Position numbers and translations under genes: made by a program. Below the pieces are notes generated by a model. It was not told where the DNA came from, searched no databases, and saw nothing but the letters and a program-made list of their open reading frames with translations. A stretch of DNA of 64,000 bases, taken from sequence record MW384823.1; one strand, 5' to 3'. The first letter of the stretch is position 1; each line of letters begins with the position of its first letter. Below, one piece after another: positions 5,921-28,200 of this stretch.

Positions 5921-6805
5921 ATGGGTGTTAAAATCAGTTGGGATAGCCAAGCGGGTAAAGGGTTGGATGCGGTCGAAGTGTATCGTAGCAAAACCAAGAT
6001 TGACCCGCAGAATCCGGGTACGCCATTGGCGACGCTCGATCCGAGCCTGACGTCGTATGAAGATTTCACGGCGGTCAACAAAAACCTTTACTACTACTGT
6101 CTGGCAGCGAAGAAAGGGTCTGAACGGTCTTTTGGTACCAATCAGTTGACCGCGTATTTCTCGGAGACCGGGCCGGGTAACGCCACCCTTGCGCGGGGAA
6201 GTTGGAACGCAGGCTTTATGGATCGTGTGCCGAGTGCTTCGTTTATTACCGGAAACGACTTGGCCGCAAAACTGACGGGCCTGGTTTACACTGGTAACCC
6301 CGGACAACCGGCTAACTGGTTCAAGTTTGCGTACAAAGGGAAGATTCTGTTCTTCCCAGATGTCGCACTGTTCACCGCCTCGTGGAGCCGTTTCTACGAC
6401 GCAGGCATGGTGTTCGGTACCGATGATTTTGGGAAAACGCCGTCGGGGGTACCGGGTTCGGTTAACCAGAAACGTATCGTGGAAATCAACGGGTTGCAAT
6501 ACATCGCACGTTTGGCCAAGCTCTCTGACATCGACTTGGGTAAATACCTGACGGTGCAAGATGATACCATCGCCAGCGAATACCGTTCGACGTTAACCCG
6601 TATGCTGCGCGCGACGGTTGAAACACAAGCGGGTGCGTTACGTCGTTTCGGTGACATGACGTCGTTACCACTCATGTTGGGCCAACATCTATATTCGGCA
6701 ACACAGGCAGCGTTTGCGCAAGCGGCAGCACCGGCGACGTTAGGCGTGACGGCTATTACCACCGCCGTATCCACTGCCATTGTGCTTGAGCTGATCATGC
6801 CATAA
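5921..6805 (+). CDS. virion/tail-associated protein, type C paralog 2
   Basis: 294 aa; MGVKISWDSQAGKGL; WFKFAYKGKILFFP; ends LELIMP. Confidence 0.7.
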   Translation: MGVKISWDSQAGKGLDAVEVYRSKTKIDPQNPGTPLATLDPSLTSYEDFTAVNKNLYYYCLAAKKGSERSFGTNQLTAYFSETGPGNATLARGSWNAGFMDRVPSASFITGNDLAAKLTGLVYTGNPGQPANWFKFAYKGKILFFPDVALFTASWSRFYDAGMVFGTDDFGKTPSGVPGSVNQKRIVEINGLQYIARLAKLSDIDLGKYLTVQDDTIASEYRSTLTRMLRATVETQAGALRRFGDMTSLPLMLGQHLYSATQAAFAQAAAPATLGVTAITTAVSTAIVLELIMP

Positions 6806-12828: not shown

Positions 12829-13428
12829 TTATTTAGAACATACGCCTACCTTGATAGCGTAGTCGCCCATTTCACGGTAGACGCGGTCATACCAACCGTA
12901 AGTGAACTCTTCGTTCTGCACACGCTTCTCGGAAATCTCGGTGTAGTACGACACCTGATGCGAGGTCAGTGCGAACATCAGACGGTTGAAGCCATCCAGA
13001 CCACGGGCTTTCAGGAAGCCTTCCAGTGCAGTCATGGTGGCCGGGCCGATACCGCCATCAGCATCGATGTCGGCGTACAGTTTACCCTGACGGTTCAGGA
13101 CGTTCAGGATGCGCTGGAGAGACTTGATGCAGTTAGCACGACCGGCGTTGATACCGAAGTCGAACATACGGTCAGCCAAGAGCGGATTCCATGCGAGAAT
13201 ACGGTCAAGGCGCATACGGTCCCACCATCCTTTCTTGTAGATGTCAAGAGCCATCTGACGCGTCAGGTTACGCATGTCACCGGTGTACCCGTTTTCACGC
13301 GCGGTTGCTTGAGTGATGCCGAAGTTGGTTGGGCCACCCAAATCGTTTGGGTTGTTAACATAACCGGCTTCAATGTTAACTTTGGCCGCGATGATACCTT
13401 CCATACTCCAACGGTCTACAGCTGTCAT
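12829..13428 (-). CDS. endolysin, glycoside hydrolase family 108 with C-terminal peptidoglycan-binding domain
   Basis: EAGYVNNPNDLGGPTNFGIT, FDFGINAG, LQRILN...DGGIGPAT, F.YGW; start MTAVD after GAGG SD. Confidence 0.9.
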   Translation of the reverse strand: MTAVDRWSMEGIIAAKVNIEAGYVNNPNDLGGPTNFGITQATARENGYTGDMRNLTRQMALDIYKKGWWDRMRLDRILAWNPLLADRMFDFGINAGRANCIKSLQRILNVLNRQGKLYADIDADGGIGPATMTALEGFLKARGLDGFNRLMFALTSHQVSYYTEISEKRVQNEEFTYGWYDRVYREMGDYAIKVGVCSK

Positions 13429-13471: not shown

Positions 13472-13512
13472 AAAAAAAGAAAAGCGACCCACCCCCGAAG
13501 GAGTGGGTACGG
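13472..13512 (-). terminator. intrinsic terminator closing the radical SAM operon
   Basis: ACCCACTCC-ttcg-GGGGTGGGT plus T run on the minus strand, immediately after the 13514 stop. Confidence 0.75.
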
Positions 13513-13513
13513 C

Positions 13514-14170
13514 TTAGGCTACACCATTATCCGCAGCAAGCTGCTTGATTGCAGTGAAGTCTTTTTGTTCCGTGAGGATACGGATGCGTTGTTTCAGCAC
13601 GGACATGACCATGTGCAGGTCGTTGTCACGCGCGATGATTTCCGCATAGAGGGCTTTGACGTCCTCCACCGTCCACGGCTCGATAGGCTCGTTGTTCAGC
13701 GTCATCCAGTACATCGGGTCAACCCCGGACTGCATGTAGCTTTGCATCGAAGCGCGCGATTTCTCGTCGGCTTGGAACGTCTTGTCACGGAAGGTAATCG
13801 GTGCAAACCGTTCCGCGTTATACTTGTCGTTCAGCTTCGGATAAATCGCATTGACTTCCTGATAGAGATAGTTTTCCGTCGAGGTCAGCGCGGTACGTAC
13901 TTGGTCTAAATCAATCTCCAGCACGTTCGCGATGAAGTCTTTGGTCTTCTTCATCAGGAATTCAATTTCGACCGGAGACAGGTCGAAGCCTTTGAGTTTC
14001 TCGCGGGCTTTCTTGTCGCTCATACCGTTAATCAGATGGTAGTGCAGCAGCAGGCAGAACCCAATGCGGTTTTCCATCTGGTCTTGGTATTCTTCCACGT
14101 AGTTACCGTAGCGGTCGATACGTGTGCCCCGTTCGAAATAGCGGGCTTTTATTTCGTCGTTACTAAGCAT
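13514..14170 (-). CDS. DUF4376-like protein (family associated with tail-fibre genes)
   Basis: C-terminal ITFRDKTFQADEKSR...YWMTLNNE...VKALYAEI resembles DUF4376. Confidence 0.6.
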   Translation of the reverse strand: MLSNDEIKARYFERGTRIDRYGNYVEEYQDQMENRIGFCLLLHYHLINGMSDKKAREKLKGFDLSPVEIEFLMKKTKDFIANVLEIDLDQVRTALTSTENYLYQEVNAIYPKLNDKYNAERFAPITFRDKTFQADEKSRASMQSYMQSGVDPMYWMTLNNEPIEPWTVEDVKALYAEIIARDNDLHMVMSVLKQRIRILTEQKDFTAIKQLAADNGVA

Positions 14171-14706
14171 CCGGATTCTCCTGCAATCCCAAGGTCAACC
14201 AGCAGACCGAAGTCAATGAACTGGAAATCATTTTCCAACTCTTCACCCCAGAGCAGTTTGGCCTCTTCTGCTTCGTCACCCATCTCTTCCAGCGTCTTAC
14301 GTGCCACTTCGAACTCGTGGTAGAACGCATCGGTCAGGTGGGTACCGCGCAGAGCACGGATGGTCACACCAGGGAAGTTCAGGGCCAGTCCCACGACGTT
14401 AGTTGGGTCGGCATCACCGGTAGACCGGCGCAGCACCTGCAACTTGTGTTTCGGGAACGCCACCACACGTTCTTCGAAACCGGGATTACGCTTCTCGATT
14501 TCGACAACAGACTGGTGGTCATCTTCCACGCCCTGTAAAGGCAGGATGACGTTCAGGCCATAACGGTTCAACAGACGAATGGTGTCATCGTTGAAATCTT
14601 CACCCGGCACGATCGCATGGATGTTGTACAGCTTGTGTTTGCGAAGAAACGCATCAACAAGGTGAACGTTACGCCGAGTAAAATTGTGAATCAGCAATGA
14701 CTTCAT
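14149..14706 (-). CDS. hypothetical protein in the radical SAM operon
   Basis: 185 aa; overlaps both neighbours. Confidence 0.65.
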   Translation of the reverse strand: MKSLLIHNFTRRNVHLVDAFLRKHKLYNIHAIVPGEDFNDDTIRLLNRYGLNVILPLQGVEDDHQSVVEIEKRNPGFEERVVAFPKHKLQVLRRSTGDADPTNVVGLALNFPGVTIRALRGTHLTDAFYHEFEVARKTLEEMGDEAEEAKLLWGEELENDFQFIDFGLLVDLGIAGESGCLVTTK

Positions 14707-16015
14707 TCGAGGCTCCGAGTTCTAATTTAAGTTTGTCTGCCTGCATACGTTCACGTACACAGCTCGCACAGTAGCACATGGACTTATCGTGCAGGTCTGC
14801 GACATTCGTGGTACCGGTTTTCTGATACCAGTATTCGGACACCAACAGTTTCGCGGTCGTCCAACCACACTGGCGACGCTCAGCGTGGTACTCTTTACGC
14901 GCTTCCAGCTCACCGTCACCGTTCTCGTAAGACGCGGCCGCACAGCTACCGCACGAGTGTTTCATCGGGCAGCCTAAGCAGGTAGACGGGTAGTTGGTGT
15001 ACTGCGTCTGGATTTCGTTCAGGAGCTTGTGACCGTCAATGTTCACAATCTCACGGCCACGCAGTTCTGCTACAGCCGAACGGGTGGTCACGGTTGACAT
15101 GAAGCGGTTACAGCCGTAAATCTTACGGTCGAAGCCGAGACAGGTCATGTGGGTCAGCGTACCGCAGTAAGGACGTACGCGGTCTGGGTGCAGACGGGTT
15201 GCTTCATCGTCCAGCAACTTCTGACGCCAGTCCGGGTCCCATGTCGCCATGAAGTCCAGCCCATCAGGAATGATGTGGGTCAGGATGTTACGCGGGGACT
15301 TGTGGTAGCCGTTGTCGACCCAGTAATCGATAACGTCCATCATCTGGTTCGCAATGCCCAGAGACATATCACGCGTCAGGATATCTTCATACGTGACGTT
15401 ACCGGAGATGGTACCACCGCCTGTTTCTTTAATCAGGTGAATCATGCTCTCGCCGTAACGAGGCAGGGTCTCACCAGTAAAGGTGGCTTTGATACCGAGT
15501 TCTGCAATACCGACAGATTTCAGGTATTGGTAGCCGCGCATCGCTTGCTCGTACGAGCCTTCACGCGAGGTGGTGAAGATACGATAGCGGTCGTGCACTT
15601 CTGGCAGACCATCGATGGACACACCAATCGACAGACGGTCTTTCCAGCGTTCAATGATTTCTTTGCTGATGGGACGGTCGAACAAGGTGCCGTTGGTAGA
15701 AATAGAGAATACGTACTGACGGTTGTCGCGCGCCGCTAATTCTTCCGCTGTCTCAAAGACGGCTTTCAGAATCTTCGGCTGCATAAACGGCTCACCCCCG
15801 ATGATGTCGATAATGATTTCGGCATCTTCGATGTGACGGTCGCGGTCAAAACACGCATGAATAAAATCGACAGCGTCATCCACTTTGTTGTTACGCGGAT
15901 ATTTACGCTCGTAGCAATACGAACAGTCGAGATTACAAGACAGGTTAGTTACCACCTGATACGTGAGTGTGGGGCGCTGTTTACGCGTCTGCGATGTAGA
16001 TCGTTCTTCGCTCAT
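14669..16015 (-). CDS. radical SAM/SPASM-domain peptide maturase
   Basis: CNLDCSYC (CxxxCxxC), GGEP, STNG, SIDG; C-terminal C...GC...CLGCPMKHSCGSC...C SPASM-like Cys set. Confidence 0.9.
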   Translation of the reverse strand: MSEERSTSQTRKQRPTLTYQVVTNLSCNLDCSYCYERKYPRNNKVDDAVDFIHACFDRDRHIEDAEIIIDIIGGEPFMQPKILKAVFETAEELAARDNRQYVFSISTNGTLFDRPISKEIIERWKDRLSIGVSIDGLPEVHDRYRIFTTSREGSYEQAMRGYQYLKSVGIAELGIKATFTGETLPRYGESMIHLIKETGGGTISGNVTYEDILTRDMSLGIANQMMDVIDYWVDNGYHKSPRNILTHIIPDGLDFMATWDPDWRQKLLDDEATRLHPDRVRPYCGTLTHMTCLGFDRKIYGCNRFMSTVTTRSAVAELRGREIVNIDGHKLLNEIQTQYTNYPSTCLGCPMKHSCGSCAAASYENGDGELEARKEYHAERRQCGWTTAKLLVSEYWYQKTGTTNVADLHDKSMCYCASCVRERMQADKLKLELGASNEVIADSQFYSA

Positions 16016-16905
16016 TTGATTACCTCATTGCGATGTTTGCGAGCGTGGATCGTGCGATTGATGTAACGGTAGGCGTCTTGCCCAATGACTTTCGCCAGCA
16101 TGTTACAGCCGCTATCGATTTCCATCTCGACATCCATCGTGTAGCCGATAGACGCATCGGAGTCCAGACGAACCAGACCGCTGCACGCGTTGCACGACTG
16201 CTCAAAGAACTTGCTGATGGAGAACCCGGTTGAGCCATTGTTCATGACATTCAAGCGTTCAATCTGGTCTTCCATCTTGTTGTAACCGAACATGAAGTTC
16301 ATCACCAAATCTTGGTTCAGAGGTTTCTTCATGCGGTTGTCCAACAGCAGCGTCATGTCTTTGAAGCCGTAGTGGTAGAGTGCGCGGTGTAAGTCCAGCA
16401 GGTCAGTGTGCCAATATTTATCAGCCAACTGCTCACGAGTCACCACGGCCCACGTATGGACGTTGTTCAGCGCAGCCATCACTTCGAAGGCTTCGAATGC
16501 GCCATCTTCAACGACACGCCAGAGCGGACGTTCGCTCTTTTTGTATCCATCGAACGACACACAGATACGGTTAAACTGTTGCAGCATCGGGAGGTGCTCC
16601 AGACGCATTTTCAGGCCGTTCGTGTACAGCTCGTGAGTGAGATGCGGATAACGGGCTTTGACTTCGGCCAGCAACGGCTCAATCTTACGGGTTGCCATCA
16701 ACGGCTCACCGCCCGTCCAGTTCATCCCTTGTAAAGTCGGGTACTTCTCCAGTTGTTCAAACAGCGCTTCACGCTGAATTTCCCGACCAACATCTTTTGT
16801 GTCCATGTAATACGCTCCGCCGCAGAAACTACAATCCAAATTACACTTGGACGTCGTCACTATCGACAGCTCGGTAGGGGGACGTATTTGTGGTGCATCG
16901 GTCAT
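16012..16905 (-). CDS. second radical SAM enzyme with short C-terminus
   Basis: CNLDCSFC, TGGEP, YTNG, SFDG; only CNAC...C downstream; 4-nt overlap with the next gene. Confidence 0.85.
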   Translation of the reverse strand: MTDAPQIRPPTELSIVTTSKCNLDCSFCGGAYYMDTKDVGREIQREALFEQLEKYPTLQGMNWTGGEPLMATRKIEPLLAEVKARYPHLTHELYTNGLKMRLEHLPMLQQFNRICVSFDGYKKSERPLWRVVEDGAFEAFEVMAALNNVHTWAVVTREQLADKYWHTDLLDLHRALYHYGFKDMTLLLDNRMKKPLNQDLVMNFMFGYNKMEDQIERLNVMNNGSTGFSISKFFEQSCNACSGLVRLDSDASIGYTMDVEMEIDSGCNMLAKVIGQDAYRYINRTIHARKHRNEVIK

Positions 16906-16923: not shown

Positions 16924-17802
16924 TTAATAGATCGCGAAAAGGGGATCGTCCTCAAACTTCGCGCCCACATCCAGCAAGAAGTCGGAGTGGTAGGCTTCGA
17001 GAATCTGATTCAGAATCGCATGACGGTCGTTAACCCGCTTGAGGTCATCGAGGGTCACGATTCGCGACTTGATGTTTGAAACTGCCTTTTCTTCGTCAGC
17101 TGTCAGGGAAACCTTCGTCATAAGGAAACTTACCAGCTTGCTCAGGTCAGCCTCGGTGCCCGGCGCTTCACCGTAACGCCACTGAACCAAGAACTGCATC
17201 CACGGTTTGCGGATACGGCGACTGATTTCGTGTGGGTCGGTAATCGCTTCGAACTGCTCATCTACCGCATTCCAGCGGAACTTGTAGCTGTAGGCCAGCA
17301 AGTCAGCCAGACAATGGATACCGAGCGTTTCATAACCTACGATGTGGTGGTATTTTTCCACACCTTTATACTCTTCGGTGCCGGTTGGTACTAAGGTGTA
17401 CCAGAACGGATTGGAAGACGGATAGTCCCAGCTCCATTCGCGACGAACCATGGGAATGACGTCCAAATCCGCAAACGGCGTGAAGATCATTTCCAAATCC
17501 ATCGAGTGGTTCAGGACTGCATCAGTAAAGAAATACTTACCGTCAATCAGTCGGCCACTGGAGTTCAGCTCGCTTTCATTAAACTTCACATGCTGAACGG
17601 TGTGCTTACCGATGGAGTAGGTATTCTCTTCGGTGTACTGCTTACGAACAATGTCCCGCCCACGTACCTTAGGCCATTCGCCTGGCAGCATCGAGATAAG
17701 GCGTACTTCGTCCGCGATGTGTGCTTTCACACTGTCGTACGACGAAATGTGTAACGGGAAATTTTGCGTCGTGCGGTACGCCAAATGGAGGTCGTTCTTC
17801 AT
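16924..17802 (-). CDS. hypothetical protein between precursor peptides and radical SAM genes
   Basis: 292 aa open frame, colinear with the operon. Confidence 0.75.
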   Translation of the reverse strand: MKNDLHLAYRTTQNFPLHISSYDSVKAHIADEVRLISMLPGEWPKVRGRDIVRKQYTEENTYSIGKHTVQHVKFNESELNSSGRLIDGKYFFTDAVLNHSMDLEMIFTPFADLDVIPMVRREWSWDYPSSNPFWYTLVPTGTEEYKGVEKYHHIVGYETLGIHCLADLLAYSYKFRWNAVDEQFEAITDPHEISRRIRKPWMQFLVQWRYGEAPGTEADLSKLVSFLMTKVSLTADEEKAVSNIKSRIVTLDDLKRVNDRHAILNQILEAYHSDFLLDVGAKFEDDPLFAIY

Positions 17803-17820: not shown

Positions 17821-18030
17821 TTATCGGTTACCCGCGCCGTAACTGCACCCACCACTGCACGACCAGCTACAGCTACCGTTGCAGTTATAATGCGAGAGTG
17901 GAAGCCCAGCAAGGTTGTTGGTCGAACTGACCGTGCCGCGTGTGGCGATATAGTTATTGGCCTGTGCGGTCGTGATGTAGCCCTCGACGTTCTGCACCCG
18001 ATCGCGAATGTTTTTCAATGAGATTGCCAT
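17821..18030 (-). CDS. putative RiPP precursor 3 (short core, 4 Cys)
   Basis: 49-aa leader MAISLKNIRDRV..VE; core CNGSCSWSCSGGCSYGAGNR; GAGG SD. Confidence 0.8.
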   Translation of the reverse strand: MAISLKNIRDRVQNVEGYITTAQANNYIATRGTVSSTNNLAGLPLSHYNCNGSCSWSCSGGCSYGAGNR

Positions 18031-18051
18031 AGGTCCTCACTCGATAGATTT

Positions 18052-18444
18052 CTATCGACTGCCTGAACAGCCAGAGCATCCCGTACAACTTGAACTACAG
18101 GAACCGGAACAGTTACCGGAGCATGTACCCGAACAACCGGAGCACCCGCCCGAACACGAACCAGAACATCCTGAGCACCCACTGGTACACCCAGCAGTAC
18201 AGCTCGACGAACAAGAGGAACCGCAGCCCCCTGATGCCGAACCGGAACAGCCACCTGAACAGCTAGAACAACCCCAGCTACAGGTTCCGCCGCAATCGTA
18301 ATGAACACGTCCTTGGCCGCCGAATAAGTCGACGTTATTGGTTGCCTTGCCACGAATGTAGGTTTGAACCCCACCTTCCGTTTTTAAGGCGTTCGCTTCG
18401 ATCACCGCAATGCGATCCGCGAGGTTTCGTAAGTTGATAGCCAT
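18052..18444 (-). CDS. putative RiPP precursor 2 (Cxxx/Cxx-repeat core, 20 Cys)
   Basis: 50-aa leader MAINLRNLADRI..IE; 80-aa C/S/G/T core; GGAG SD. Confidence 0.85.
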   Translation of the reverse strand: MAINLRNLADRIAVIEANALKTEGGVQTYIRGKATNNVDLFGGQGRVHYDCGGTCSWGCSSCSGGCSGSASGGCGSSCSSSCTAGCTSGCSGCSGSCSGGCSGCSGTCSGNCSGSCSSSCTGCSGCSGSR

Positions 18445-18453
18445 TGTTGCTCC

Positions 18454-18843
18454 CTACTGTGGACCAGAGCACGCAGAACAACCGGTGCAGCTAGAAGAAC
18501 ATGACCCAGCGCAACCGCCGCCACACTTACCGCTGCACGATGACGCACAGGTACCTGAGCAACCCGAACAACCCGAACACCCACCACCGCAGTTAGAAGA
18601 ACAGCTACCCACGCACGTAGAAGTACAGGTTCCTGCGCAGCTGGTACAGCTTGCAGAACACCCGTTAGAACACGACCAGCTACAACTGCCGCCACAATCC
18701 AGACGGGAGGGAGACCACCCACTGAACGAGTCCGCAGCGTTGTAAGCTTTCGATGCTACCTGCCCATCTACACGAGGCCCGGTAGCATAGTTTGCTTCCA
18801 CATTGTTAACGCGGTCGCGTATGTTTTTCATTGAAATCGCCAT
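18454..18843 (-). CDS. putative RiPP precursor 1 (Cxxx/Cxx-repeat core, 21 Cys)
   Basis: 49-aa leader MAISMKNIRDRV..VE; 80-aa Cys-periodic core; AAGG SD. Confidence 0.85.
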   Translation of the reverse strand: MAISMKNIRDRVNNVEANYATGPRVDGQVASKAYNAADSFSGWSPSRLDCGGSCSWSCSNGCSASCTSCAGTCTSTCVGSCSSNCGGGCSGCSGCSGTCASSCSGKCGGGCAGSCSSSCTGCSACSGPQ

Positions 18844-18908: not shown

Positions 18909-20108
18909 TTATCGTGAACCCGCTTCGGCCTGTACGTCGTCGCGAGAAGTCAGGCTGCTATTGACGTGTACCGCCGCCTGAACCACACCACCGTACTGCT
19001 TGTGGAGATAGTTCGGGTGTGGGTTGTCCGCGTTAACGTGGTTCTGGAGATTCTGCGACAGGGTGTTGATGGAGTTCTGCAACCCAGCAACTTGCTGTTT
19101 CAGTGCATTAAGCTGACCAGAGAGATCCTGAATCTGCTGCTGCGTATCGGAACCGGCGGATTCCAAATCACTGATGCGCTGCTTGAGCCCATTGATGACT
19201 TGGTTCTGGTCATTGACCATCTTCTGGAGTTGCAACACCAGAGAGTTGAGGTCAGCCTGTTGTAAGGCCGCCTTCTGGTAGTTCAACGCCACCGAGTTCA
19301 GTTGGTCGTTCCACGAACCGAGCGCACTGACCACAGCATCGATGCGCGCGCCGAGTGCGGTGTCTGCGGCTTTCAGATTACCAATGTCGGCTAAGACCGC
19401 GTTAATCGCCGTTTGCACCGTTTGAATCAACGCACGGATTTCGGTTTCCGTCAGACCGTTTGCCTGATGGATGTCCAGCGCATGGACGTTACCTTTGGCA
19501 TCGATGTGCGATTGCAGAGCCGCCATCATCTGGGTTTGCATGTCAGACATGGCTGCCAGAATCTGTTGGAGCTGCACTTCGTTACCGGAGTTAATCGCGT
19601 CAGTCATCAGCGCCAGTTGCGTGATGATGTATTCGAAACCGAACAGGTCACCGAGGTCTTTAAATGCCGGAGCAGACGCAAAGGTATCCGGGACATTACG
19701 CAAATCCGCGAAGTCAACTTTACGGTCTTCAAGGTTGGCATCAGCCAACGCCTGTTTAATCGCAGAGATAACCGCCGATTGTGGGCCACCAACCGCCTGT
19801 GCAAGACAGACGATATCGGTTGGGATAGCCGGGTTAGTGACGACCACACCCATACAGATTTCGCGGTTCTTCGCAAGCTTCATGTACGCCGGATGGATGT
19901 AAATCAGCTCGTAGTCGGTACCGCGTTTATAAATGGTGTTGGGTTGATTGGCAGGCCGCATACGGAACGTGTCCGCAAAGAACGGCCCTGCTGGGAAAGC
20001 AAACGCACGGTTGACCTTCCCCCCACCTAACACAACCGGGACATTGACCGCGTTACTGGACGCAGCCCCTGTCAGGTCAAGTGGGTATTGAAATAGAATA
20101 TCTGGCAT
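18909..20108 (-). CDS. short tail-fibre-like virion protein with long coiled coil
   Basis: N-domain (GPFF...RGTDYE) shared with the three giant proteins; heptad-rich C-half; HVNADNPH motif. Confidence 0.6.
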   Translation of the reverse strand: MPDILFQYPLDLTGAASSNAVNVPVVLGGGKVNRAFAFPAGPFFADTFRMRPANQPNTIYKRGTDYELIYIHPAYMKLAKNREICMGVVVTNPAIPTDIVCLAQAVGGPQSAVISAIKQALADANLEDRKVDFADLRNVPDTFASAPAFKDLGDLFGFEYIITQLALMTDAINSGNEVQLQQILAAMSDMQTQMMAALQSHIDAKGNVHALDIHQANGLTETEIRALIQTVQTAINAVLADIGNLKAADTALGARIDAVVSALGSWNDQLNSVALNYQKAALQQADLNSLVLQLQKMVNDQNQVINGLKQRISDLESAGSDTQQQIQDLSGQLNALKQQVAGLQNSINTLSQNLQNHVNADNPHPNYLHKQYGGVVQAAVHVNSSLTSRDDVQAEAGSR

Positions 20109-20155
20109 GGCCAAACTCCCTTAGTGAGACGTCCTTGTCTCGACGTGTTAGATGG

Positions 20156-23100
20156 TTACGGCAACTTAGGCATAAGATTGACCGTCAGTTTCGATGGGGT
20201 GACCGTTCCACCGTAATAGTTGACCCCGTTGCCGATGTACAACGCGTTATCCGCAATCATCACCGGTATCGGTTGACGGAAGACGACATCCCCATGAACA
20301 ATCGGGAAGTAGTCATCGATTGAAACCCCCGCGGGCATCGCAACCTTATAGACGTCCAACACCCCACCGGTAATACGGGCAGTGGAACTGTCCACGTTTG
20401 TTGCTGCACGAATCGCCACAGTGGCAGCGTCGGAAGTGTAGAACACCGACGATGAGCCGTTGTCCACGTTTGCGATGCTGAACGCGGCGAAAGCCGAGGC
20501 TTGCCCGCCAGTAATGCCGCTAAACACAAACGTGTTCTTGACCCCCACATCTGCGGACAGGGTAATCTCGGACAATGCAGACGCGAAAGTACCAGAAACC
20601 GCAAGGTTGGCGTTAGTACACACGATGGTACCCGCGCCCAAGGTATAACCCGGTTTGAGTTTGATTTTCACCGTCGGGGTCGATGGGGTGACCTCAACAA
20701 TCATTCTCCACGCAATCGAGTTAATGGCTGACATCCCCGGAATACCCACAGAATACGCATTGTCCACATCCGAAGCCTGACTAACGTTGGCCCCTTTCAT
20801 CGTAAACTTTTTGTAGTCTTTAGGTAAGCTGGAGGTAAGCGCATCGCGTAGCAGCTCGATAGGCACCTTGTGGGTTCGTGCGGCAAAGATACCGCCGATT
20901 TGCGCGACATCCAAGTAGCCATCCCCGGTAGCCGCAGGTGCAGCAAGCGGCTGTTTGCGGAGCAGCCCCAGACGGGACAGGCGCGCTTCACTGTCCACGT
21001 TCACATCGTGACTGTAAACGATTTCAGCGTGCTCAGTCAGTTGTTTCAATTCACCCAGACGTTTCACTTTCGTGAACTCCGATGAAAGGATTCGCTGACT
21101 GTCGGTAACCACCGTCCCGATAAACAACCGACTATTGGTGTCTGGCATTTTCTGCGTCAACAGCTGGTATTCCGGTTTGCCGTTCACCACCGCCGCGTGC
21201 ATGTAGAACGTCCGGTTCTGATACGCACCGGGGAACAACGTCTTGAGGTTCTGGTTGTAGGCATCCAACGTGTAATAGTCGGAACCAAACCGTAAGCTCT
21301 CAGACTCGGTGATGTACAGCTCCCAGCCTTCTGCCGTTTTCACCCCAGCCACAATCTCATACGGCCGTGCAGTCGGTACCCAACCCGGCACGTTTGCGAT
21401 GTAGTCCTCAGGAGGCGCTGCCGGACCTGCAAGGTAGGCAGGCGAGACGTAGCTTTGGTTCGTGCGAGCAAGTTTATTACCGACAATTGCCAACTGGGTT
21501 GGGTTGTAGTAATACGCTGAACTCAGCATCGTTGCACCGTTGTTGACGAGCTTCGACCCGTTTAAGGTGAACTTCATCTCAAAGTGCTTTGACCCCGCAC
21601 CCCCAACCACGTTGTACTGATACACGTTCGGCAAGTGCAGGAAACCTGTGCCGTCCCCTTTCTCGTAAAAGATAGGTTGTGTGTAACGCTGGGTGTGGTA
21701 ATGGTAATACGTGATACTCATCGCCGTGATTGACGGTTCGGCAATGTTGACGCCGTACACCATGTCAACCGTGGTGATGGGGAACGTTACCGTTGAGCCT
21801 GTCACGGTAGGGTAAATCTGGAACAGGTAGTAGTCGACGAAACGGCTACTGTTGCGGTCACTCTTCACCGCCACTTGCACCAACCAAATCGGCTTGGCAT
21901 CTTTCGGACGAATCGCCCACACAGAGAACTGAGGGTCAGCTCCTGCATTGATATATTCGTTCGCGTAAGCGTTAGCCGAACCCGACGGTGCTTGTGACTT
22001 GATGGTGCTTAGGAGCGTGTTCCAGTCACTCTGGCTAATTGTCAGGACGTCAGCAGTTGGGCTGTCACCCACGGCTTGGTAGTTCTGACTGCCGGGTGCT
22101 GTCCAGTAGGCACCTTGCGGTTTCCCGTTTTGCAGACTACCGGATGCACACCACGTCATGTTCCCCAGCTTGTAATACTTCGCGAGGTCAAACGCACGCC
22201 GCACGTTGGACGGGCCTAAGCCGCCAAAGTCCGGTGAGTAACGGGTGTCCGGGTCAGTCTCAACATACACCGCACTGGCCTCAGTAATTGGTGCCAGCAG
22301 GTATGCGTTGTTGCCGAGGTATACCGCGCCACTGTAACCCACTTTCAGTACCGACCCCACCCCGCCATTGAACACCCACGCATCTACCTGATTCATGCCG
22401 TAGTTAGAATGGGCTTCCAGATGGTCAAACAACGAACGGCTATTATCCCCTAACACACAACGGCTAATCCCGGTCTGGTTCGCCGCGTCACCGGGGTCAA
22501 AGTACGTCCAGAAATACGGGCTATTGTCAATCGGATAAACGTGGGTACGGTTGTTGGCAAAACCATACGCCCATTTCGCTTGATAGCCTTTGGTGCGCAT
22601 TTCTTCGCCGGTAGCCAGATATACCCCGTCGACATCAATCTTCAGCGGGAAGATCTCAGGGTTCTCAAGCGTAACCGCGAACGCATCCATGTCCACCACG
22701 AACGATGTCGGCCACACGGTAAATGGATACGACCCATCAGCATTCGCCAGATAAATCGTACCGTTTACACCGACGCGCAACGTCGCGTTTTTCAGGGCAA
22801 CACCGGCATGGGTTTGTGGGCCATGCGCAATGTTACGCGTTTGCCACTTCGCCAAGCCCGCCGCCGTTACCGTTGACAGACCGTTCGGCACAACAGTTGT
22901 CGAGCCGGGGTCAATCGGTTGACGCAAGTTAACGAAGACGCCTTGGCGACTGGTACCGCCAGTCAGCGCCACAGACGCGAACACTATTCCCCCGTTGGCG
23001 TTTACCGTACCGACCAACATAAAGGTGCGGTAATAGTTGTTAGTGACTTCCATGCGTAGGATATACACGCGGTCTTTGTAGACCACAACATGATCCGTCA

Positions 23101-25177
23101 ACTGGTTCGGTGAATAGTTAAACGTAGAGCCAGAACCGGGTAAATCGGTTGGGAAGGTCGTCTGCCAAACACGCAGGTGTTTCTTCTGGTTAAGCGTCCC
23201 GTCAAACATGATGGTGTAGTATTTGTTGTCTGTCCCCAAACAGACCATCGCGTCTTCACCACACACGACGATTGCCACCAGTTTCACACCGGGGAACGCA
23301 CTCATGCCCGCCGGTTGATAAACGTAGGAGGTTTGCTGGCGTTTAACCATCAGTCCCGCCGTGTCAATCTGAGCATACGAGTAATAGATGTAGTCCGTAT
23401 TCGGTAAGCCGTCGTTGGCGTTCCGTAAGGCATACACCGTGTCCGCTTCCTGCTTAATCACCCCTAAAGACTGTGGTTGATTAAACCGTTTGGCAAAACC
23501 TGCGTAGTTACCCACAGCCGGGATGGGCAGATAGCCGGGGTTACCGTAAGCAGCACCACCGGTCGTCCACGACGGCATCAGGCCATCCAGCACCCCTTTG
23601 TACTCGTTCAGACGCTGCTGTACATTGTAGCCCTGCTTTGACGTCACCACCTTATTCGTGGTGTTATCAATTGCATCCCACAGCTGCAACAGACCCGCGT
23701 CTGTATCGGACGCCGTGGGCACGCCAGTCAGGTCAGCGAAAGTGTGCGTGTGGTTTGCCAGTGACTTGTTTGCCAGCACTGCACGGATCGCATTGGTCAG
23801 TGGTTTCTCAGCAGGGGCGGTGTTGTTGATGTTACCCACACCCAAATCGGTTGCCGTCAGGGTCAGTGACTGCTTTGTGCCGTCATCAATAAACTTCTTC
23901 CCGTTGATGGTGTACGTGTTGTCCACGTAATCATCCAGCGTCTTTTTCAGGACGTTAACAGCGTACTGGGAAATCGCAGTACCGGAAGAAATATTTGCAG
24001 ACAGGTTGGTAATGGCAAACAGACCCGGCACTTTGTCAGTGGCGGTCGGGAGTTGCGCATTCATGGTCAGGGGAGACGACTGCTTCGCCGTACCGAACAC
24101 CTTGATGGTGTCGGTGGGCGAAAAATACGCATTGCCCGGCAACAGTTTTACTTCGGACAGGTACAGCGATACCATATCCGGTGTGACCAAGTATGCCCCG
24201 TTAAAGATAGGTGCCACGGCACCGTTGAGTACATACGCGGTGTTCAGGCCGGAACCCAACTCCACACCCACGCCCCGTTCGTTGCTGTCTGCATCGGCAG
24301 TGATGTTAATAGCACGGGTAGTGGTAATAAGGAACTTGTCACCTTGCAGGGTGATGACGTGACTGGAGTCGGCGGTACGGAACGTCAGGGCACCGTTGTT
24401 CAGCACCTTGAGGCGACCACGCAGTTCGCCGAGTACCACCGGCATCAGGGTATCGATGTGGGTTTGCTGAATACCGTTCGCTTTCATGATAGCGACTAAC
24501 TCGTCCAGCGTCTTACCGAACGCCTTCGTTGAGTCAATTGCCTTGGTCAATACCTTTAATGCCCCAATCTCATCTGCCGTGTATTGGTGTGCGTTCTTGA
24601 TGCGGTGGTGGCTGTACAGGTTGTCATCAAAAATCTTTTTACCGTTGGCGAAAATCAAATCGGTGACTTCGGTGTACGCCGCATCCATTTCCCCTGCACG
24701 CTTAATCAGACCCTGGCGAATGTCATCCAGTGCTTTGACCACTTCGTCACGGAGCAGGGCTTCGTCCAGGTTAGCAGGTGGGTCAATTGCAGGAATCACC
24801 GGCGCATAACGCATCAGTTCAGACCAATCGGTGTTACGCGGGTCTTTGATGTCCTCTTTTACTAAGAACTTACCAATCTCGGTTTGTGGCACGCGATATT
24901 CACGGCCAACGGAATAGATTGTGTAGTCAACGGAGGTGTCCCCGTTAATCAACATAATCCCGCCGTAGATTTGGTCTTTCATTGCGACAGCGGCTTCTTT
25001 GTAATAGTAGCCGAGGTAGTAATCCAGACCCTCAATGAGCTTTACGCCTGCGCTGTTTTTCAGCTCAAGCCCGGTACGGAAGAACGGCCCCTCAGGAGGG
25101 ATGACCACATTGTATTTGTTCGGATACGTGGTCGTCAGTAGCGTACCGGTAAATTTGGCTACGTTCGTGCTCGCCAT
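20156..25177 (-). CDS. giant tail-fibre-like virion protein (1673 aa)
   Basis: Shared GPFF N-domain; G+.N+.NT...KP...HTH module; Gly/Thr/aromatic beta-rich body. Confidence 0.7.
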   Translation of the reverse strand: MASTNVAKFTGTLLTTTYPNKYNVVIPPEGPFFRTGLELKNSAGVKLIEGLDYYLGYYYKEAAVAMKDQIYGGIMLINGDTSVDYTIYSVGREYRVPQTEIGKFLVKEDIKDPRNTDWSELMRYAPVIPAIDPPANLDEALLRDEVVKALDDIRQGLIKRAGEMDAAYTEVTDLIFANGKKIFDDNLYSHHRIKNAHQYTADEIGALKVLTKAIDSTKAFGKTLDELVAIMKANGIQQTHIDTLMPVVLGELRGRLKVLNNGALTFRTADSSHVITLQGDKFLITTTRAINITADADSNERGVGVELGSGLNTAYVLNGAVAPIFNGAYLVTPDMVSLYLSEVKLLPGNAYFSPTDTIKVFGTAKQSSPLTMNAQLPTATDKVPGLFAITNLSANISSGTAISQYAVNVLKKTLDDYVDNTYTINGKKFIDDGTKQSLTLTATDLGVGNINNTAPAEKPLTNAIRAVLANKSLANHTHTFADLTGVPTASDTDAGLLQLWDAIDNTTNKVVTSKQGYNVQQRLNEYKGVLDGLMPSWTTGGAAYGNPGYLPIPAVGNYAGFAKRFNQPQSLGVIKQEADTVYALRNANDGLPNTDYIYYSYAQIDTAGLMVKRQQTSYVYQPAGMSAFPGVKLVAIVVCGEDAMVCLGTDNKYYTIMFDGTLNQKKHLRVWQTTFPTDLPGSGSTFNYSPNQLTDHVVVYKDRVYILRMEVTNNYYRTFMLVGTVNANGGIVFASVALTGGTSRQGVFVNLRQPIDPGSTTVVPNGLSTVTAAGLAKWQTRNIAHGPQTHAGVALKNATLRVGVNGTIYLANADGSYPFTVWPTSFVVDMDAFAVTLENPEIFPLKIDVDGVYLATGEEMRTKGYQAKWAYGFANNRTHVYPIDNSPYFWTYFDPGDAANQTGISRCVLGDNSRSLFDHLEAHSNYGMNQVDAWVFNGGVGSVLKVGYSGAVYLGNNAYLLAPITEASAVYVETDPDTRYSPDFGGLGPSNVRRAFDLAKYYKLGNMTWCASGSLQNGKPQGAYWTAPGSQNYQAVGDSPTADVLTISQSDWNTLLSTIKSQAPSGSANAYANEYINAGADPQFSVWAIRPKDAKPIWLVQVAVKSDRNSSRFVDYYLFQIYPTVTGSTVTFPITTVDMVYGVNIAEPSITAMSITYYHYHTQRYTQPIFYEKGDGTGFLHLPNVYQYNVVGGAGSKHFEMKFTLNGSKLVNNGATMLSSAYYYNPTQLAIVGNKLARTNQSYVSPAYLAGPAAPPEDYIANVPGWVPTARPYEIVAGVKTAEGWELYITESESLRFGSDYYTLDAYNQNLKTLFPGAYQNRTFYMHAAVVNGKPEYQLLTQKMPDTNSRLFIGTVVTDSQRILSSEFTKVKRLGELKQLTEHAEIVYSHDVNVDSEARLSRLGLLRKQPLAAPAATGDGYLDVAQIGGIFAARTHKVPIELLRDALTSSLPKDYKKFTMKGANVSQASDVDNAYSVGIPGMSAINSIAWRMIVEVTPSTPTVKIKLKPGYTLGAGTIVCTNANLAVSGTFASALSEITLSADVGVKNTFVFSGITGGQASAFAAFSIANVDNGSSSVFYTSDAATVAIRAATNVDSSTARITGGVLDVYKVAMPAGVSIDDYFPIVHGDVVFRQPIPVMIADNALYIGNGVNYYGGTVTPSKLTVNLMPKLP

Positions 25178-25263: not shown

Positions 25264-28200
25264 TTATACCCACTGACCGAGGTCAGTTCCATCTGTGGTG
25301 CGTTCAGCGTCCATCTTAGCCTGCAACACATTCCACAACTTTGTGGTCATGTGCAACGGGTTTATCCTTTTCGCTGTGTAGCGGTCAGCCACGAACCACA
25401 TCGCGTCCGCCACGGTAGCTTCCGTTATCGTGGTGAGCAATGTGCCGCCCGCATCGTAAAGTTCGTACGTGAACTCCAGTGTCAGCGGATCGGGTGTGTA
25501 TCCCGGCAAATAGACCAGTTGGAGTTTTAACCCACCGCGACGGGCCGAAAACGGAACACCGATTTCACCCGCGACAGGTGAACCGGCCGCCACATTCACC
25601 ACCTGCCCACCAATGGCAATCTGACGTACCGCTTTGGCTGCTGTGCCTTTGACGATTTTCAGTTTTGCCACTTTGGAGGCTTGCGGGAGGTTGTAGTCAA
25701 CCACCATTCCTGCAACGAGGAAATTCGTGCCATCCGAACTGCCGTATTTCCCGAACCAGTTGCCGTTTGTCACAACCGAGTGAACCGACTGGAGGACTGC
25801 ATCTCGGTTGAACGCCAACGGCAGGTAACCTGCATGTGACGCATGGAAAGAACGACACCCCATCGGCACCAACTGGTATTCGGTATACCGCACATCTGGC
25901 GTGAACACCCCCGCTGGTACCACCACGGTCGCGTTGTTAACCGACGTATTTGGTAACACCCCGGAATCCGCGTACGACTCGAACAGTGAACGTAGGTATT
26001 GGTAGTTGTCTTCGACAAACCCAATCCCCTCCAGCGGTGCCACAGACCCCAAGAGACTACAGACACTTGCGCCCCCTCCTAACGGCGGCAGTTCAAGCCC
26101 AACATAGCCACCCATCAGCCCACGGACATCAACATCGAACTGAATCTCCAGCTCATTGATGAGTAAAGACCCGTCAGTGTCGTTTGGATTGCCCGCGAAG
26201 TACACACTGAACACCGACAGTTTCCTGAGCGTGACGTTGTACGAGTACCGCACCGCCAGTCTTGGGGAACCTGCTTTCAGCGTGGTCAAGTCCATTACCC
26301 CCAACACCGACGACGCTTCATTTTTCCGAAGCGATGTGGTTTTGGAATACAGGATATTGGATTCAAACGTCGGTAGGGTCGTCTCAACACCCGCATGGGA
26401 TGCGATGGCGTTAACGTAGCCGTAGTCAGGTTCGGTGGCACCATCAAGCGGAACACGCAGATACCGGTTTCGGTAATCTGCACTCACACTCCCAAGCGTT
26501 GGGCTGGCGAACAGCAGCGCAGGTAAAGGTTGTGCGAACAGACCGTTCGTTTGGTACTCCTCGTACACCAACCCACCTTGGAATGTCGCAGCCCCATTCG
26601 CTTTCGGATTTGACGGAGTGAACCACCACTGTGGCGATTGCTCCGTCGTCTCCAACAGCATGTACGCTTTCTTCGTGGCGCTGTTGCGCGACATTTGGGC
26701 TAACCCATAAACCGTCTCCGCACCCGCCGTGACTTCGCCATACAGCGCTGACGGTGAATTGAACCGCAGTTTACCAATCGGCAACATCAGCGCGTTATCT
26801 GCCAGCGACCAATCACGCGCGACCGCGAGGTGTTGTTGCAGACTGGCGATGTGGTCGGCGGCTTCGTTCGACACCCCGTAATCGTGCATCATCGGGAAAC
26901 TGATGGTCGATGTACTGATGCCGCCCGCAGGGACATCAACAACACCAATCAGTGCAGTCTCCGGTGCAACCTCGTTCGTCAGTTGCGGTTCCGCACGGCT
27001 GTACATGGACTGGGTCACCATGTTCAGATACAGGAAGTGGCGGTTGCCAAACGTTGGGGTCATGAACTCCCCAAGCTGTGTAATCGGTGTCCCGACATCA
27101 CTGCGGTAAATTGGCAGGGATTCGTCGTACACCTCAAACGCCATGGCTGCTGCTTTGGTTGGGTCGTTACAGTCTGCACGAATCCCCAGACAGGCAGATT
27201 GTTTTGCAGAGTTCACGTCGACTTCCAAGAAGAGCGGCGAGTTGCCTGTACCTACTTCTTGCCCGTCCAGATAAACCGTCACCTTGCCACCCGCCACGAT
27301 ATACAACCGCAGCGTGCCTGTGTACGATTTTAAGCGCAGTTTAGACAACAGAGAGATAACGGACAGGTTACCCATCCCAGTCGCACTCAAACCGATTGGG
27401 GTCGCTTTTAAGGCAAACTTCGGTTTAGAGGAGATGGTTGAGAAGTCAAAGTTCGCTGCTGTGTTCTTCACCGCAGGCGTCCAGTTACGTTCCATCGTGT
27501 TGTTCGGACTGAACCAATTGAACATCGGGGTGGTTTCGAGGTTAATCGACCCACTGACCTTGCCCTCAGCCCGGTCATTTCCGCGCAGGTAGAAATACTG
27601 GAGGTCTTTGACTTGCAGGATACGGCCGGATGCCACCGACCATGTTGACGCGTTAATGATGGAAAAGTCCGAAGACACGCCGGTTTTCACCGACTTCAAC
27701 GCATCACTAATCACATCCAAACGATCGCTCAACCGTTTCAGGACATTCGGGGTCACACCTTTGTTGGCCACCAGACCATCATCCAAATCGGTATAGCGTC
27801 CCAAGCCTTCACTGACGTTTGTCGCCAGCGGTAAGTTTAGGGAAGCAAACGTGTGTTTGTGTCCTTTATCGCTTAACCCGTCCATCGCAGTAGATTGGTC
27901 AGCGGATACCGGTTTGTCCACATCAGCGGTATTATCCGCTTGGCTCAAACCGATATCGGCCTTTGTCATCACCCGTGCACCGTCGTCCATCGGTTTGGAA
28001 TTGAGCATGGTGGTTTTTGCCACATAGCCCGACGCCTTACCTTCGTACGGCTGTAACGAATCCGGGGTCGATGCAACGCCAGTGGTTTCGTCACCGGTAC
28101 CCGATTTTAACACCGCGGTGCCTTTTACGGCACTGGTGGCTGTCGGGAGGGAAAGCGTGGCCTTGACTGGATCGGCTTTCGAACCTTTACCCGTTACCGA

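Follow-up and report, generated by a model that had tools for sequence, protein, structure and literature searches.

The evidence tilts modestly toward reading three cysteine-rich peptides of an Erwinia phage, P1–P3, as small proteins of the tail fiber module with Cys domains cross-linked by radical SAM enzymes, and not as the precursors of a classical secreted RiPP. We infer that the Cys domains are modified, the chemistry of that modification, that the N-terminal part is retained, and that the products are incorporated into the virion. A radical SAM–fiber peptide module of this kind appears to be common to many unrelated phages and has apparently never been described before. Our literature search found no paper linking radical SAM enzymes, or the TIGR04115 and PF27846 families, with tail fibers, or dealing with CXXX repeats or these jumbo phage genes.

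The window, meaning the whole 64-kb stretch of DNA that was analyzed (MW384823), comes from Erwinia phage pEa_SNUABM_43; all coordinates given here refer to its minus strand. Within a tail fiber block lies a unit of eight genes encoding P1, P2, P3, an accessory protein, a small radical SAM enzyme (rSAM297), a radical SAM/SPASM enzyme (rSAM448), a 185-aa protein, and a DUF4376 protein. Terminator-like hairpins with T-runs stand on both sides of the unit, one between a 401-aa fiber gene and P1 (18872..18894) and the other after the DUF4376 gene (13487..13508). The trio heads the unit, between the fiber genes and the DUF4376 gene, and lies ~1.8–2.8 kb upstream of the rSAM448 gene, which adjoins that of rSAM297; a Cys-repeat target also neighbors the enzyme in all homologous loci. 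The last gene (13514..14170) encodes a 218-aa DUF4376 protein with weak matches to tail fiber and tail proteins, and the 185-aa protein (14149..14706, phrog_7988) belongs to the unit in jumbo phages only. Upstream of the trio, a coiled-coil virion structural protein (18909..20114), the ortholog of the non-head virion protein gp167 of phage SPN3US, is a candidate attachment partner.

P1 (type 1, 18454..18843) is a 129-aa peptide with 21 Cys, P2 (type 2, 18052..18444) a 130-aa peptide with 20 Cys, and P3 (type 3, 17821..18030) a 69-aa peptide with 4 Cys that ends in GAGNR and is encoded by the most conserved gene in the unit. The architecture reported in the initial annotation was recovered here in full. 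All three peptides share the start MAI(S/N)(L/M)(K/R)N(I/L)xDR(V/I), have an N-terminal region of uniform length (49–50 aa) that places the first Cys at residue 50, 51, and 50, respectively, and have cores that begin C(G/N)G(S/T)CSW(S/G)CS. The two long cores are 80 aa each and terminate in CSSSCTGCS(A/G)CSG, with Cys every 3–4 residues throughout and ~90% of residues drawn from S/C/G/T/A. By composition, Cys accounts for ~26% of the peptide, and the cores contain neither Asp nor Glu. Some of the wording of that description needed revision. The Ala that replaces an expected Cys in P2 does keep the register (Cys spacing of 8, as 4+4), but it is a conserved feature of the clade and not a one-off. 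The Trp described as invariant is nearly so, being present even in distant fibers, yet Phe takes its place in the type-2 peptides of Seoulvirus and of the jumbo phage contig L112; with two enzymes present, this residue could be a second modification site or could simply be structural. P3 had been regarded as having a truncated core, which proved wrong: the short form is conserved and is found in all clades, with 2–4 Cys. Small size, several paralogs, and an N-terminal region of ~50 aa are also typical of a RiPP cluster and in that respect speak against a fiber role.

Database searches with the peptides themselves returned little. None of P1–P3 matched a Pfam family, even at E ≤ 10 (in a Pfam copy without the PF27846 model), or an NCBIfam family, and a word-based homolog search with P1 gave four matches only, owing to the low complexity of its sequence. 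More informative was the domain structure. Each peptide consists of a ~50-aa N-terminal part with two predicted helices, a junction of the form N-(A/N)-x-x-(L/F)-x-G-x4-5-(Y/L)-x, and a C-terminal Cys domain that begins CxG(S/T)CS(W/F). Alignment and hhalign place the junction together with CxGxCSW at residues 35–56 of P1 (18676..18741), residues 36–57 of P2 (18274..18339, also by BLASTP), and residues 35–56 of P3 (17863..17928). The same succession of junction, CSW, and Cys repeats forms the C-terminus of true tail fiber proteins in unrelated phages and prophages. For example, P2 matched by BLASTP the C-terminal junction of fibers on contigs L027 (E = 4e-9, covering the junction and first repeats) and L024 (E = 3e-5), and hhalign aligned the junction to fiber shafts with a probability of 93.6 (E = 2e-7). 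A third such fiber, on L025, matches PF12571 (E = 1.8e-40). At the family level, N-termini belonging to tail fiber, collar fiber, and tail protein PHROGs are joined to a C-terminus of phrog_6085, the family to which P1 belongs (E = 1.5e-48). Several junction-bearing fiber proteins retrieved by profile search also match phrog_6085, among them P0191, which carries a faint precomputed match to PF27846. This family, named 'tSAM_targ_Cxxx_rpt', is recorded in precomputed annotations on fiber proteins that share the junction and repeats of the window; for the 568-aa L027 fiber and P0004 (precomputed PF27846), the Pfam copy used here, which lacks that model, returned no family.

The homology to fibers is limited to the last ~15 residues of the N-terminal region, and hhalign detects no fiber homolog of the first ~35 residues. 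We considered whether the N-terminal helix (LKNIRDRVxxVE) is related to the helices that precede the junction in fibers or to the 'ALKARVxAE' motif seen in mid-size targets, and dropped the idea because profile comparison backs the last 15 residues alone. The N-terminal region is as conserved as the core. Given that the junction and Cys repeats constitute the C-terminal domain of true fibers elsewhere, the apparent leader is better interpreted as a piece of shaft or adaptor that stays on the protein. Of the two functions first proposed for this region, enzyme recognition or assembly, the second fits better. With its final ~15 residues homologous to a fiber junction, it is unlikely to be a RiPP leader of the kind that is discarded.

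Fiber linkage extends to the enzymes. Homologs of rSAM448 with 31–38% identity, accompanied by at least one further radical SAM gene and an accessory protein, are encoded directly downstream of tail fiber genes. The contexts comprise a P2-like Campylobacter prophage, GpJ-type tail modules (Deferribacter and L114), a temperate phage with a T7 fiber-like protein (L111), and a T4 gp13-linked contig (L027), in which an accessory homolog went undetected. Radical SAM pairs or triplets occur in L024, L025, L027, L111, L112, and L114. The homology of the small enzyme with tail fiber-linked modules is weaker than that of rSAM448 and the accessory protein and involves two systems. A separate contig scan with the enzyme alignment found Cys-repeat ORFs at 13 of 80 loci, none of tail fiber type; its patterns were those of radical SAM enzymes in general, and most of what it recovered were unrelated SPASM enzymes.

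The 448-aa SPASM enzyme (14669..16015) has a CX3CX2C motif at residues 27–34 and a seven-Cys SPASM region. Across 18 homologs, the cluster motif (C27/C31/C34) and the further cysteines C284, C292, C302, C346, C349, C355, C358, and C383 are invariant or nearly so. Its best NCBIfam match is the CXXX-repeat target family TIGR04115 (126.4 bits, E = 1.7e-36, below the 350-bit cutoff), followed by the PapB ranthipeptide maturase (NF047865; 125.4 bits, below the 340-bit cutoff). The best match among solved structures is the radical SAM domain protein 5wgg (E = 2e-12), which we take to be the thioether-forming CteB of the thermocellin/SCIFF pathway. The core of rSAM448 begins at residue ~20, and the alignment starts at residue 105 of the 5wgg chain, leaving ~80 N-terminal residues of that chain without a counterpart; the missing stretch is presumably the RRE of CteB. 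With a SPASM gene whose best family matches are CXXX-repeat target and ranthipeptide maturases located 1.8 kb downstream in the same unit, the neighboring enzymes very likely act on the cores, which supports this side of the initial interpretation. The 297-aa enzyme (16012..16905) has CX3CX2C at residues 21–28, three C-terminal Cys, and a Twitch-like character, and it aligns over its full length, C-terminal Cys included, with a prophage counterpart. The 292-aa accessory protein (16924..17802, phrog_8030), a conserved companion of the two enzymes, is orthologous to SPN3US gp165, and its family HMM matches counterparts in L114, L111, and L025 (E = 7e-21 to 2e-13). AlphaFold gives it a confident model, for which Foldseek against PDB and BFVD retrieved only its own ortholog; a sequence search of PDB gave no match. 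A protease, RRE, or chaperone fold for this protein found no support in the Foldseek comparison.

Several known systems bear comparison. Those defined by TIGR04115 and PF27846 likewise place a SPASM radical SAM enzyme beside a protein in which Cys recurs every 3–4 residues over long stretches, although rSAM448 scores well below the TIGR04115 cutoff; to our knowledge, both families are bioinformatic definitions for which neither chemistry nor a biological role has been published. With CteB and with PapB, the freyrasin enzyme, rSAM448 shares the SPASM architecture. It further resembles PapB in beginning at the radical SAM core, as the PapB profile does, and freyrasin resembles the window's peptides in offering repeated short Cys-containing units (CX3D repeats) as substrate. 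However, the acidic residues that PapB uses as acceptors (Asp/Glu) are those absent from the window cores. Unlike those of ranthipeptide and sactipeptide systems, the phage products are apparently components of virion proteins and not free peptides, and the phage module adds a second radical SAM enzyme and a novel accessory protein as obligatory partners. Phage fiber tips with assembly factors, such as T4 gp37 with gp38/gp57A or those with Tfa-type chaperones, offer a parallel of another kind: position in the fiber block followed by non-virion helper genes, and a tip domain at the fiber C-terminus, as the Cys domain is in other phages. Here, in contrast, radical SAM enzymes fill the helper role, which implies covalent chemistry in place of folding help, and the jumbo phage tip domain is split into three proteins of ~7–13 kDa.

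The three-peptide set was found in every jumbo phage locus extracted, spanning several genera, and the number and register of its Cys are rigid; orthologs of P1 have 21 Cys in all clades. In these phages the Cys domain is separate from the fiber, with no fusion, and the unit lies in the structural tail fiber block at each locus examined. The fiber genes beside the trio are orthologs of SPN3US gp167–170, which are non-head virion proteins, gp168–170 having been called baseplate/tail fiber candidates (PMC5694885). Mass spectrometry of the SPN3US virion detected gp167–173 and left gp161–166 undetected (PMC5694885, Supplementary Table 1). Counterparts of P1–P3 are missing from this virion list, their ORFs having been absent or misframed in the search database. 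Published proteomes could not detect the peptides because the genes were unannotated or misframed.

A mechanism consistent with these observations can be proposed. Late in infection, the peptides, accessory protein, and two radical SAM enzymes would be made from one transcription unit. The SPASM enzyme would convert Cys thiols into covalent cross-links, probably aided by the accessory protein since both enzymes lack an RRE domain for leader binding. Because rSAM448 scores far under the TIGR04115 and PapB cutoffs, the chemistry of these links is assigned by analogy with the nearest characterized relatives: they are probably thioethers, most likely to carbons of neighboring Ser, Gly, Thr, or Ala. 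The smaller enzyme may add more of the same links or carry out another modification, for which the conserved aromatic residue is a possible site. The expected product is a rod or knob, covalently stapled and insensitive to redox conditions, that could be assembled in the reducing cytoplasm and would survive outside the cell. Its N-terminal part would be kept, serving to oligomerize the three paralogs and/or to dock them on the fiber apparatus of the virion. Assembly of P1–P3 into a heteromer is plausible; it would agree with the universal occurrence of three paralogs, with Cys columns that lie in register between types 1 and 2, and with the fact that fibers are trimers. In its widest form, which we advance tentatively and consider a little short of even standing, the proposal is that many unrelated tailed phages build a covalently cross-linked Cys-repeat fiber tip by means of a three-protein module (accessory protein, small radical SAM enzyme, and SPASM radical SAM enzyme), and that SPN3US-like jumbo phages have split the tip into three heteromer-forming mini-fiber proteins.

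One alternative is a classical phage RiPP, in which the ~50-aa leader would direct the radical SAM enzymes before being cut away, and the cross-linked cores would be freed at lysis as diffusible products with, for example, antimicrobial, signaling, or anticompetitor roles. The uniform N-terminal length agrees with this account, as do the multiple small ORFs just upstream of a SPASM enzyme akin to ranthipeptide and CXXX-target maturases, and related bacterial SPASM enzymes do adjoin short CXXX peptides of 61–94 aa that resemble true precursors. We nevertheless regard it as unlikely. No leader peptidase or exporter family was detected among the eight genes (Pfam, NCBIfam, and PHROGs), and no RRE was seen in rSAM448, by comparison with the 5wgg chain, or in the accessory protein model. 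The SPASM enzyme occurs in 62 jumbo phage records, with the unit embedded in fiber genes wherever the locus was examined, and its closest relatives all reside in tail modules in which the target domain is fused to a fiber. The peptides themselves also fit a RiPP poorly: the end of the supposed leader is the fiber junction, leader and core are equally conserved, and the type-3 peptide of L112 carries a further domain of ~140 aa after its Cys motif.

A second alternative dispenses with modification of the peptides and holds that the Cys region is a metal- or iron–sulfur-binding domain of metallothionein type, with the radical SAM enzymes acting elsewhere or sharing needs for cluster assembly. 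In its favor are the high Cys content and the outcome of structure prediction: modeled unmodified with AlphaFold from a 24-sequence alignment, without ligands, the Cys region of P2 has no confident fold (pLDDT 30–40), as would also be expected if the region needs cross-links or partners. T4-type fiber tips bind metal ions along the trimer axis, a precedent that also counts for this reading. The Cys pattern, however, is a regular CxxxC/CxxC with only S/G/T/A between and no His, unlike the CxC/CxxC clusters of metallothioneins, and no metallothionein family matched even at E ≤ 10 in Pfam. Moreover, across six or more phage contexts unrelated to one another, the Cys-repeat domain strictly co-occurs with a radical SAM pair and the accessory protein (undetected in L027), and the curated enzyme family closest to rSAM448 takes its definition from CXXX-repeat targets. 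Metal binding by unmodified peptides is improbable.

A variant of the fiber reading assigns the Cys domain a role in assembly: interchain links would nucleate or lock fiber trimers, and the staple might later be trimmed, as are the C-terminal intramolecular chaperones of tailspikes. The C-terminal position of the Cys domain in fused fibers, the three paralogs of jumbo phages, and the register shared by type 1 and 2 Cys columns would all suit such a trimerization staple. Type 3 peptides, with only 2–4 Cys, cannot pair along the full length, however, and in jumbo phages the domain is unattached to the large fiber proteins that would need nucleation. Family scans also detected no autoproteolytic chaperone domain, and we give this variant little credence.

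P1–P3 are real genes under constraint, and their pattern is not a product of chance. A Shine–Dalgarno-like motif precedes each of them. In the minus-strand frame, the P1 core compared with that of Huxley gives a dN of 0.006 and a dS of 0.244; between genera, dS is saturated and dN is only 0.15–0.37. Twenty Cys columns are invariant across both long paralogs in every clade. The repeat is preserved at the protein level, with all Ser, Cys, and Gly codons in use and a longest exact DNA repeat of 11–12 nt, and recent DNA slippage was rejected as its source. The deposited MW384823 annotation, in which P1 and P2 are unannotated and overlain by plus-strand CDSs, would make the Cys-rich frames artifacts of a G/C-rich repeat, a reading that can be set aside as virtually untenable given the gap between dN and dS in the minus-strand frame, the Shine–Dalgarno motifs before the minus-strand ORFs, a Cys register invariant across phages with saturated synonymous sites, the correct annotation of this frame in Machina, Stratton, and EC001, and a PHROG dedicated to the peptide family. 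This exposes an annotation gap: both MW384823 and the annotation of the model phage SPN3US lack the two long peptide genes or have them wrong.

For RiPP enzymologists, the locus provides a defined and conserved set of substrates (21, 20, and 4 Cys), two enzymes, and a partner protein of novel fold. If the proposal is true, radical SAM enzymes cross-link a domain of the tail fibers in phages of various types, and RiPP-style enzymology would gain a new purpose, building part of a virion instead of a diffusible natural product. It would also represent a new viral route to an extracellular, redox-proof structure made in the reducing cytoplasm. Such a structure would matter for how SPN3US-like jumbo phages, now under development against Salmonella and fire blight, recognize their hosts and for how stable their particles are.

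The three cysteine-repeat peptides are encoded by tightly packed minus-strand genes (ORF gaps of 9, 21, and 18 nt), each preceded by a Shine-Dalgarno-like motif. P1, the type-1 peptide (18454–18843), comprises 129 aa with 21 Cys, the first at residue 50; P2, the type-2 peptide (18052–18444), comprises 130 aa with 20 Cys, the first at residue 51; and P3, the type-3 peptide (17821–18030), comprises 69 aa with 4 Cys, the first at residue 50. Their cores, counted from the first Cys onward, span 80, 80, and 20 aa, respectively. Cys recurs every 3–4 residues, all three cores begin with C(G/N)G(S/T)CSW(S/G)CS, those of P1 and P2 end alike, and P2 bears Ala at one Cys position with the register intact. 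The initial annotation's counts for these features (first Cys, Cys numbers, core lengths, spacing, and the P2 Ala) were all correct on recount. Window positions correspond to MW384823 record positions minus 124,000, within a phage genome of 241.9 kb.

P1, P2, and P3 are real genes. In the minus-strand frame, the P1 core compared with that of Huxley gives a dN of 0.006 and a dS of 0.244, while between genera dS is saturated and dN reaches only 0.15–0.37. With dN far below dS, the reading in which overlapping plus-strand ORFs are the true genes is excluded. The Cys repeat is no DNA microsatellite, given that every Ser, Gly, and Cys codon is in use and no exact DNA repeat exceeds 11–12 nt. All three proteins match a single PHROG, phrog_6085 (function unknown), and none matched NCBIfam or the Pfam set scanned, which did not include PF27846. 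The deposited MW384823 annotation calls P3 alone and places plus-strand ORFs over P2 (pEaSNUABM43_00177, 18123–18266) and P1 (pEaSNUABM43_00178, 18434–18745). Several relatives carry the same misannotation at the P1/P2 position or no annotation there, and the type-1 gene of SEGD1 (L011, ~6001–6400) looks frameshifted.

Conservation was surveyed by tblastn, which retrieved 48 phage records with the P1 N-terminal region and 63 with the 448-aa SPASM radical SAM protein (rSAM448; 14669–16015, minus strand), 62 of the latter being SPN3US-like jumbo phages (Erwinia, Salmonella, E. coli, Proteus, and Cronobacter). Every jumbo-phage locus extracted encodes three paralog types. Type 1 has 21 Cys without exception, type 2 has 20 (21–23 in clades with Cys instead of Ala), and in-register alignment of the two gives 20 invariant Cys columns. 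P3 had been described as having a truncated core, but type 3 is short in all clades examined, with 4 Cys and a GAGNR terminus in Machina, Erskine, and Seoul viruses and a 2-Cys core (...CxGxCSW(S/T)SSGGAK...) in CR5-like and Wellington viruses. The single Trp proposed to be invariant is nearly so: Seoulvirus and L112, a 222-kb metagenomic jumbo phage, have Phe there in their type-2 peptide. Compared between the window phage and SPN3US, the N-terminal region and the core show equal conservation (67/70, 64/68, and 78/85%), and P3 ranks as the best-conserved gene in its eight-gene unit. Across clades, type-2 peptides with Ala at the "missing Cys" occur with 4-Cys type-3 peptides, and those with Cys there (CR5-like phages, Kwan) with type-3 cores of only 2 Cys, a weak co-variation spanning two or three clades (L020 3549–3947 and 3963–4172 and L109 4007–4672, compared with window 18052–18444 and 17821–18030).

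On the same strand, 3′ of P3, lie five genes encoding a 292-aa unknown (the accessory protein, 16924–17802), a 297-aa radical SAM protein (the small rSAM, 16012–16905; CX3CX2C plus three more C-terminal Cys), rSAM448 (CX3CX2C plus a SPASM region with seven Cys), a 185-aa unknown, and a 218-aa DUF4376 protein. Minus-strand terminator-like hairpins immediately ahead of P1 and behind the DUF4376 gene bracket this stretch, which suggests one eight-gene unit. A putative lysozyme/endolysin gene (12829–13428, minus strand) follows the unit's terminator; an M15 peptidase endolysin likewise lies directly 3′ of the radical SAM pair in the temperate phage L111. On the 5′ side of P1 are genes for a 401-aa coiled-coil virion protein (SPN3US gp167 ortholog) and three proteins of 1,673, 1,359, and 1,226 aa (20156–25177, 25264–29343, and 29354–33034, minus strand) orthologous to SPN3US gp168–170. 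SPN3US gp167–gp170 are non-head virion proteins (PMC5694885, Table 1, Supplementary Table 1), and gp168–170 have been termed baseplate/tail-fiber candidates (PMC5694885). The latter three are paralogous, and gp168 is essential in SPN3US. Orthologs of the eight-gene unit (gp161–166) were not detected in SPN3US virions (PMC5694885). SPN3US lacks an annotation for the type-1 gene, and its "gp166" (L002 7477–7812) was called in the wrong frame across the type-2 gene (type-1/type-2 region, L002 7001–7393 and 7404–7808); neither product could therefore have been seen in the published virion proteomes, and the non-detection is uninformative on the peptides themselves.

Against NCBIfam, rSAM448 scored best with TIGR04115 (radical SAM peptide maturase, CXXX-repeat target family; 126 bits), followed by the PapB ranthipeptide maturase at 125 bits; both scores fall far under the curated cut-offs. 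Among solved structures it is best matched by 5wgg, which has a radical SAM domain and which we take to be the thioether-forming CteB. The alignment starts at chain residue 105, and the preceding ~80-residue N-terminal stretch, presumably CteB's RRE, is absent from rSAM448. Among 18 rSAM448 homologs, the radical SAM triad and SPASM Cys are invariant or nearly so. The accessory protein yielded a confident predicted model (pLDDT 89) that matched no known fold in a structure search.

Beyond jumbo phages, the nearest rSAM448 homologs (31–38% identity, E = 1e-58 to 1e-86) all reside in phage or prophage tail modules: a P2-like Campylobacter prophage (gpW, gpJ, gpI, tail fiber, accessory, rSAM, rSAM, sheath, tube), two GpJ-type tail modules (Deferribacter and L114), L111 with its T7-fiber-like protein, and a contig with a T4 gp13-like gene (L027/L028). 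Each of the five has one or more additional radical SAM genes alongside; L114 (6622–9450), a GpJ-type module with a Cys-repeat fiber, has three in a row instead of two. Accessory-protein homologs occur in four of the five, three found by family HMM (E = 2e-13 to 7e-21) and that of Deferribacter by BLASTP (E = 6e-12); none was detected in L027. The small rSAM aligns over its full length to its L024 and L114 counterparts, partially and weakly to that of L025, and not above threshold to that of L111; it is less well conserved across the non-jumbo systems.

In all five systems, the Cys repeat is the C-terminal domain of the fiber protein itself (e.g., a 384-aa fiber with PF12571, E = 1.8e-40). A common junction motif precedes the repeat in fibers and window alike: KATNADQLGGQAGSYYRCSDCSWTCSSSC (Deferribacter fiber), NAVTLGGQPPDFYTCGGSCSWSC (L027), and KATNNVDLFGGQGRVHYDCGGTCSWGCSS (P2). 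An exhaustive junction profile search of 1.84 billion proteins returned only 42 clusters in two formats, small jumbo-phage-type proteins and 185–570-aa proteins whose junction lies close to the C-terminus, the latter joining tail-fiber, collar-fiber, or tail-protein N-termini to a phrog_6085 C-terminus. PF27846 (tSAM_targ_Cxxx_rpt), a newer Pfam family, is recorded on some junction-bearing fiber proteins. When hhalign was run on the window "leaders" without the Cys region, their final ~15 residues still matched fiber shafts (probability 93.6, E = 2e-7); the initial ~35 gave no match to them. In L112 (5001–5633, protein P0176), the type-3 peptide extends past ...CSGSCSKGAGG into a ~140-aa beta-rich domain that matched no family and may be a binding domain.

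Other Cys-rich proteins adjoin SPASM enzymes. In Candidatus Termititenax/Margulisiibacteriota MAGs (L029–L032), ~500–670-aa proteins with 79–122 Cys in CxxxC-type runs adjoin a SPASM radical SAM protein, the repeats preceded by a helix-like LKAxHLEEIRQVIDDALNNAR segment. A separate 170–250-aa class (L023 1829–2479; L110 ~4942–5520; L033, L036, and L037) has an N-terminal (F/Y)xALKA(R/K)VxAE helix, a domain of ~100 aa, and its Cys repeat at the C-terminus, and adjoins single SPASM enzymes only 25–26% identical to that of the window.

P1–P3 are best read as minimal tail-fiber-module proteins. A short N-terminal adaptor, predicted with moderate confidence to form two helices, would end in the conserved fiber junction, and the Cys-repeat domain beyond it would be the substrate of the adjoining enzymes. 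The most likely outcome is multiple thioether staples from Cys to S, G, T, or A residues, since the characterized relatives of rSAM448 make Cys thioethers; the cores contain no Asp or Glu, which rules out a reaction that is PapB-like in detail. The accessory protein may present the substrate, and, purely conjecturally, the conserved aromatic residue may be the target of the second enzyme. A putative P1:P2:P3 heteromer fits the universal three-paralog set and the in-register Cys columns. Related bacterial SPASM enzymes adjoin short 61–94-aa CXXX peptides, as a classical RiPP with a cleaved leader and diffusible product would have it, yet Pfam, NCBIfam, PHROGs, and structure comparison found no protease, exporter, or RRE in the unit, which argues against such processing and leaves this reading unlikely. 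We rate an unmodified metal-binding domain and an interchain assembly staple as less likely, each improbable.

CXXX-repeat targets of SPASM enzymes are an already curated kind, known bioinformatically. In the literature searched, we found no description of three points: a distinct clade of this system appears to form a tail-fiber maturation module common to very different phages, SPN3US-like jumbo phages carry the module's putative target as three separate mini-proteins, and the trio genes are missing or misframed in key records. We see a substantial, though less than even, chance that the system puts radical SAM peptide chemistry to a new biological purpose.
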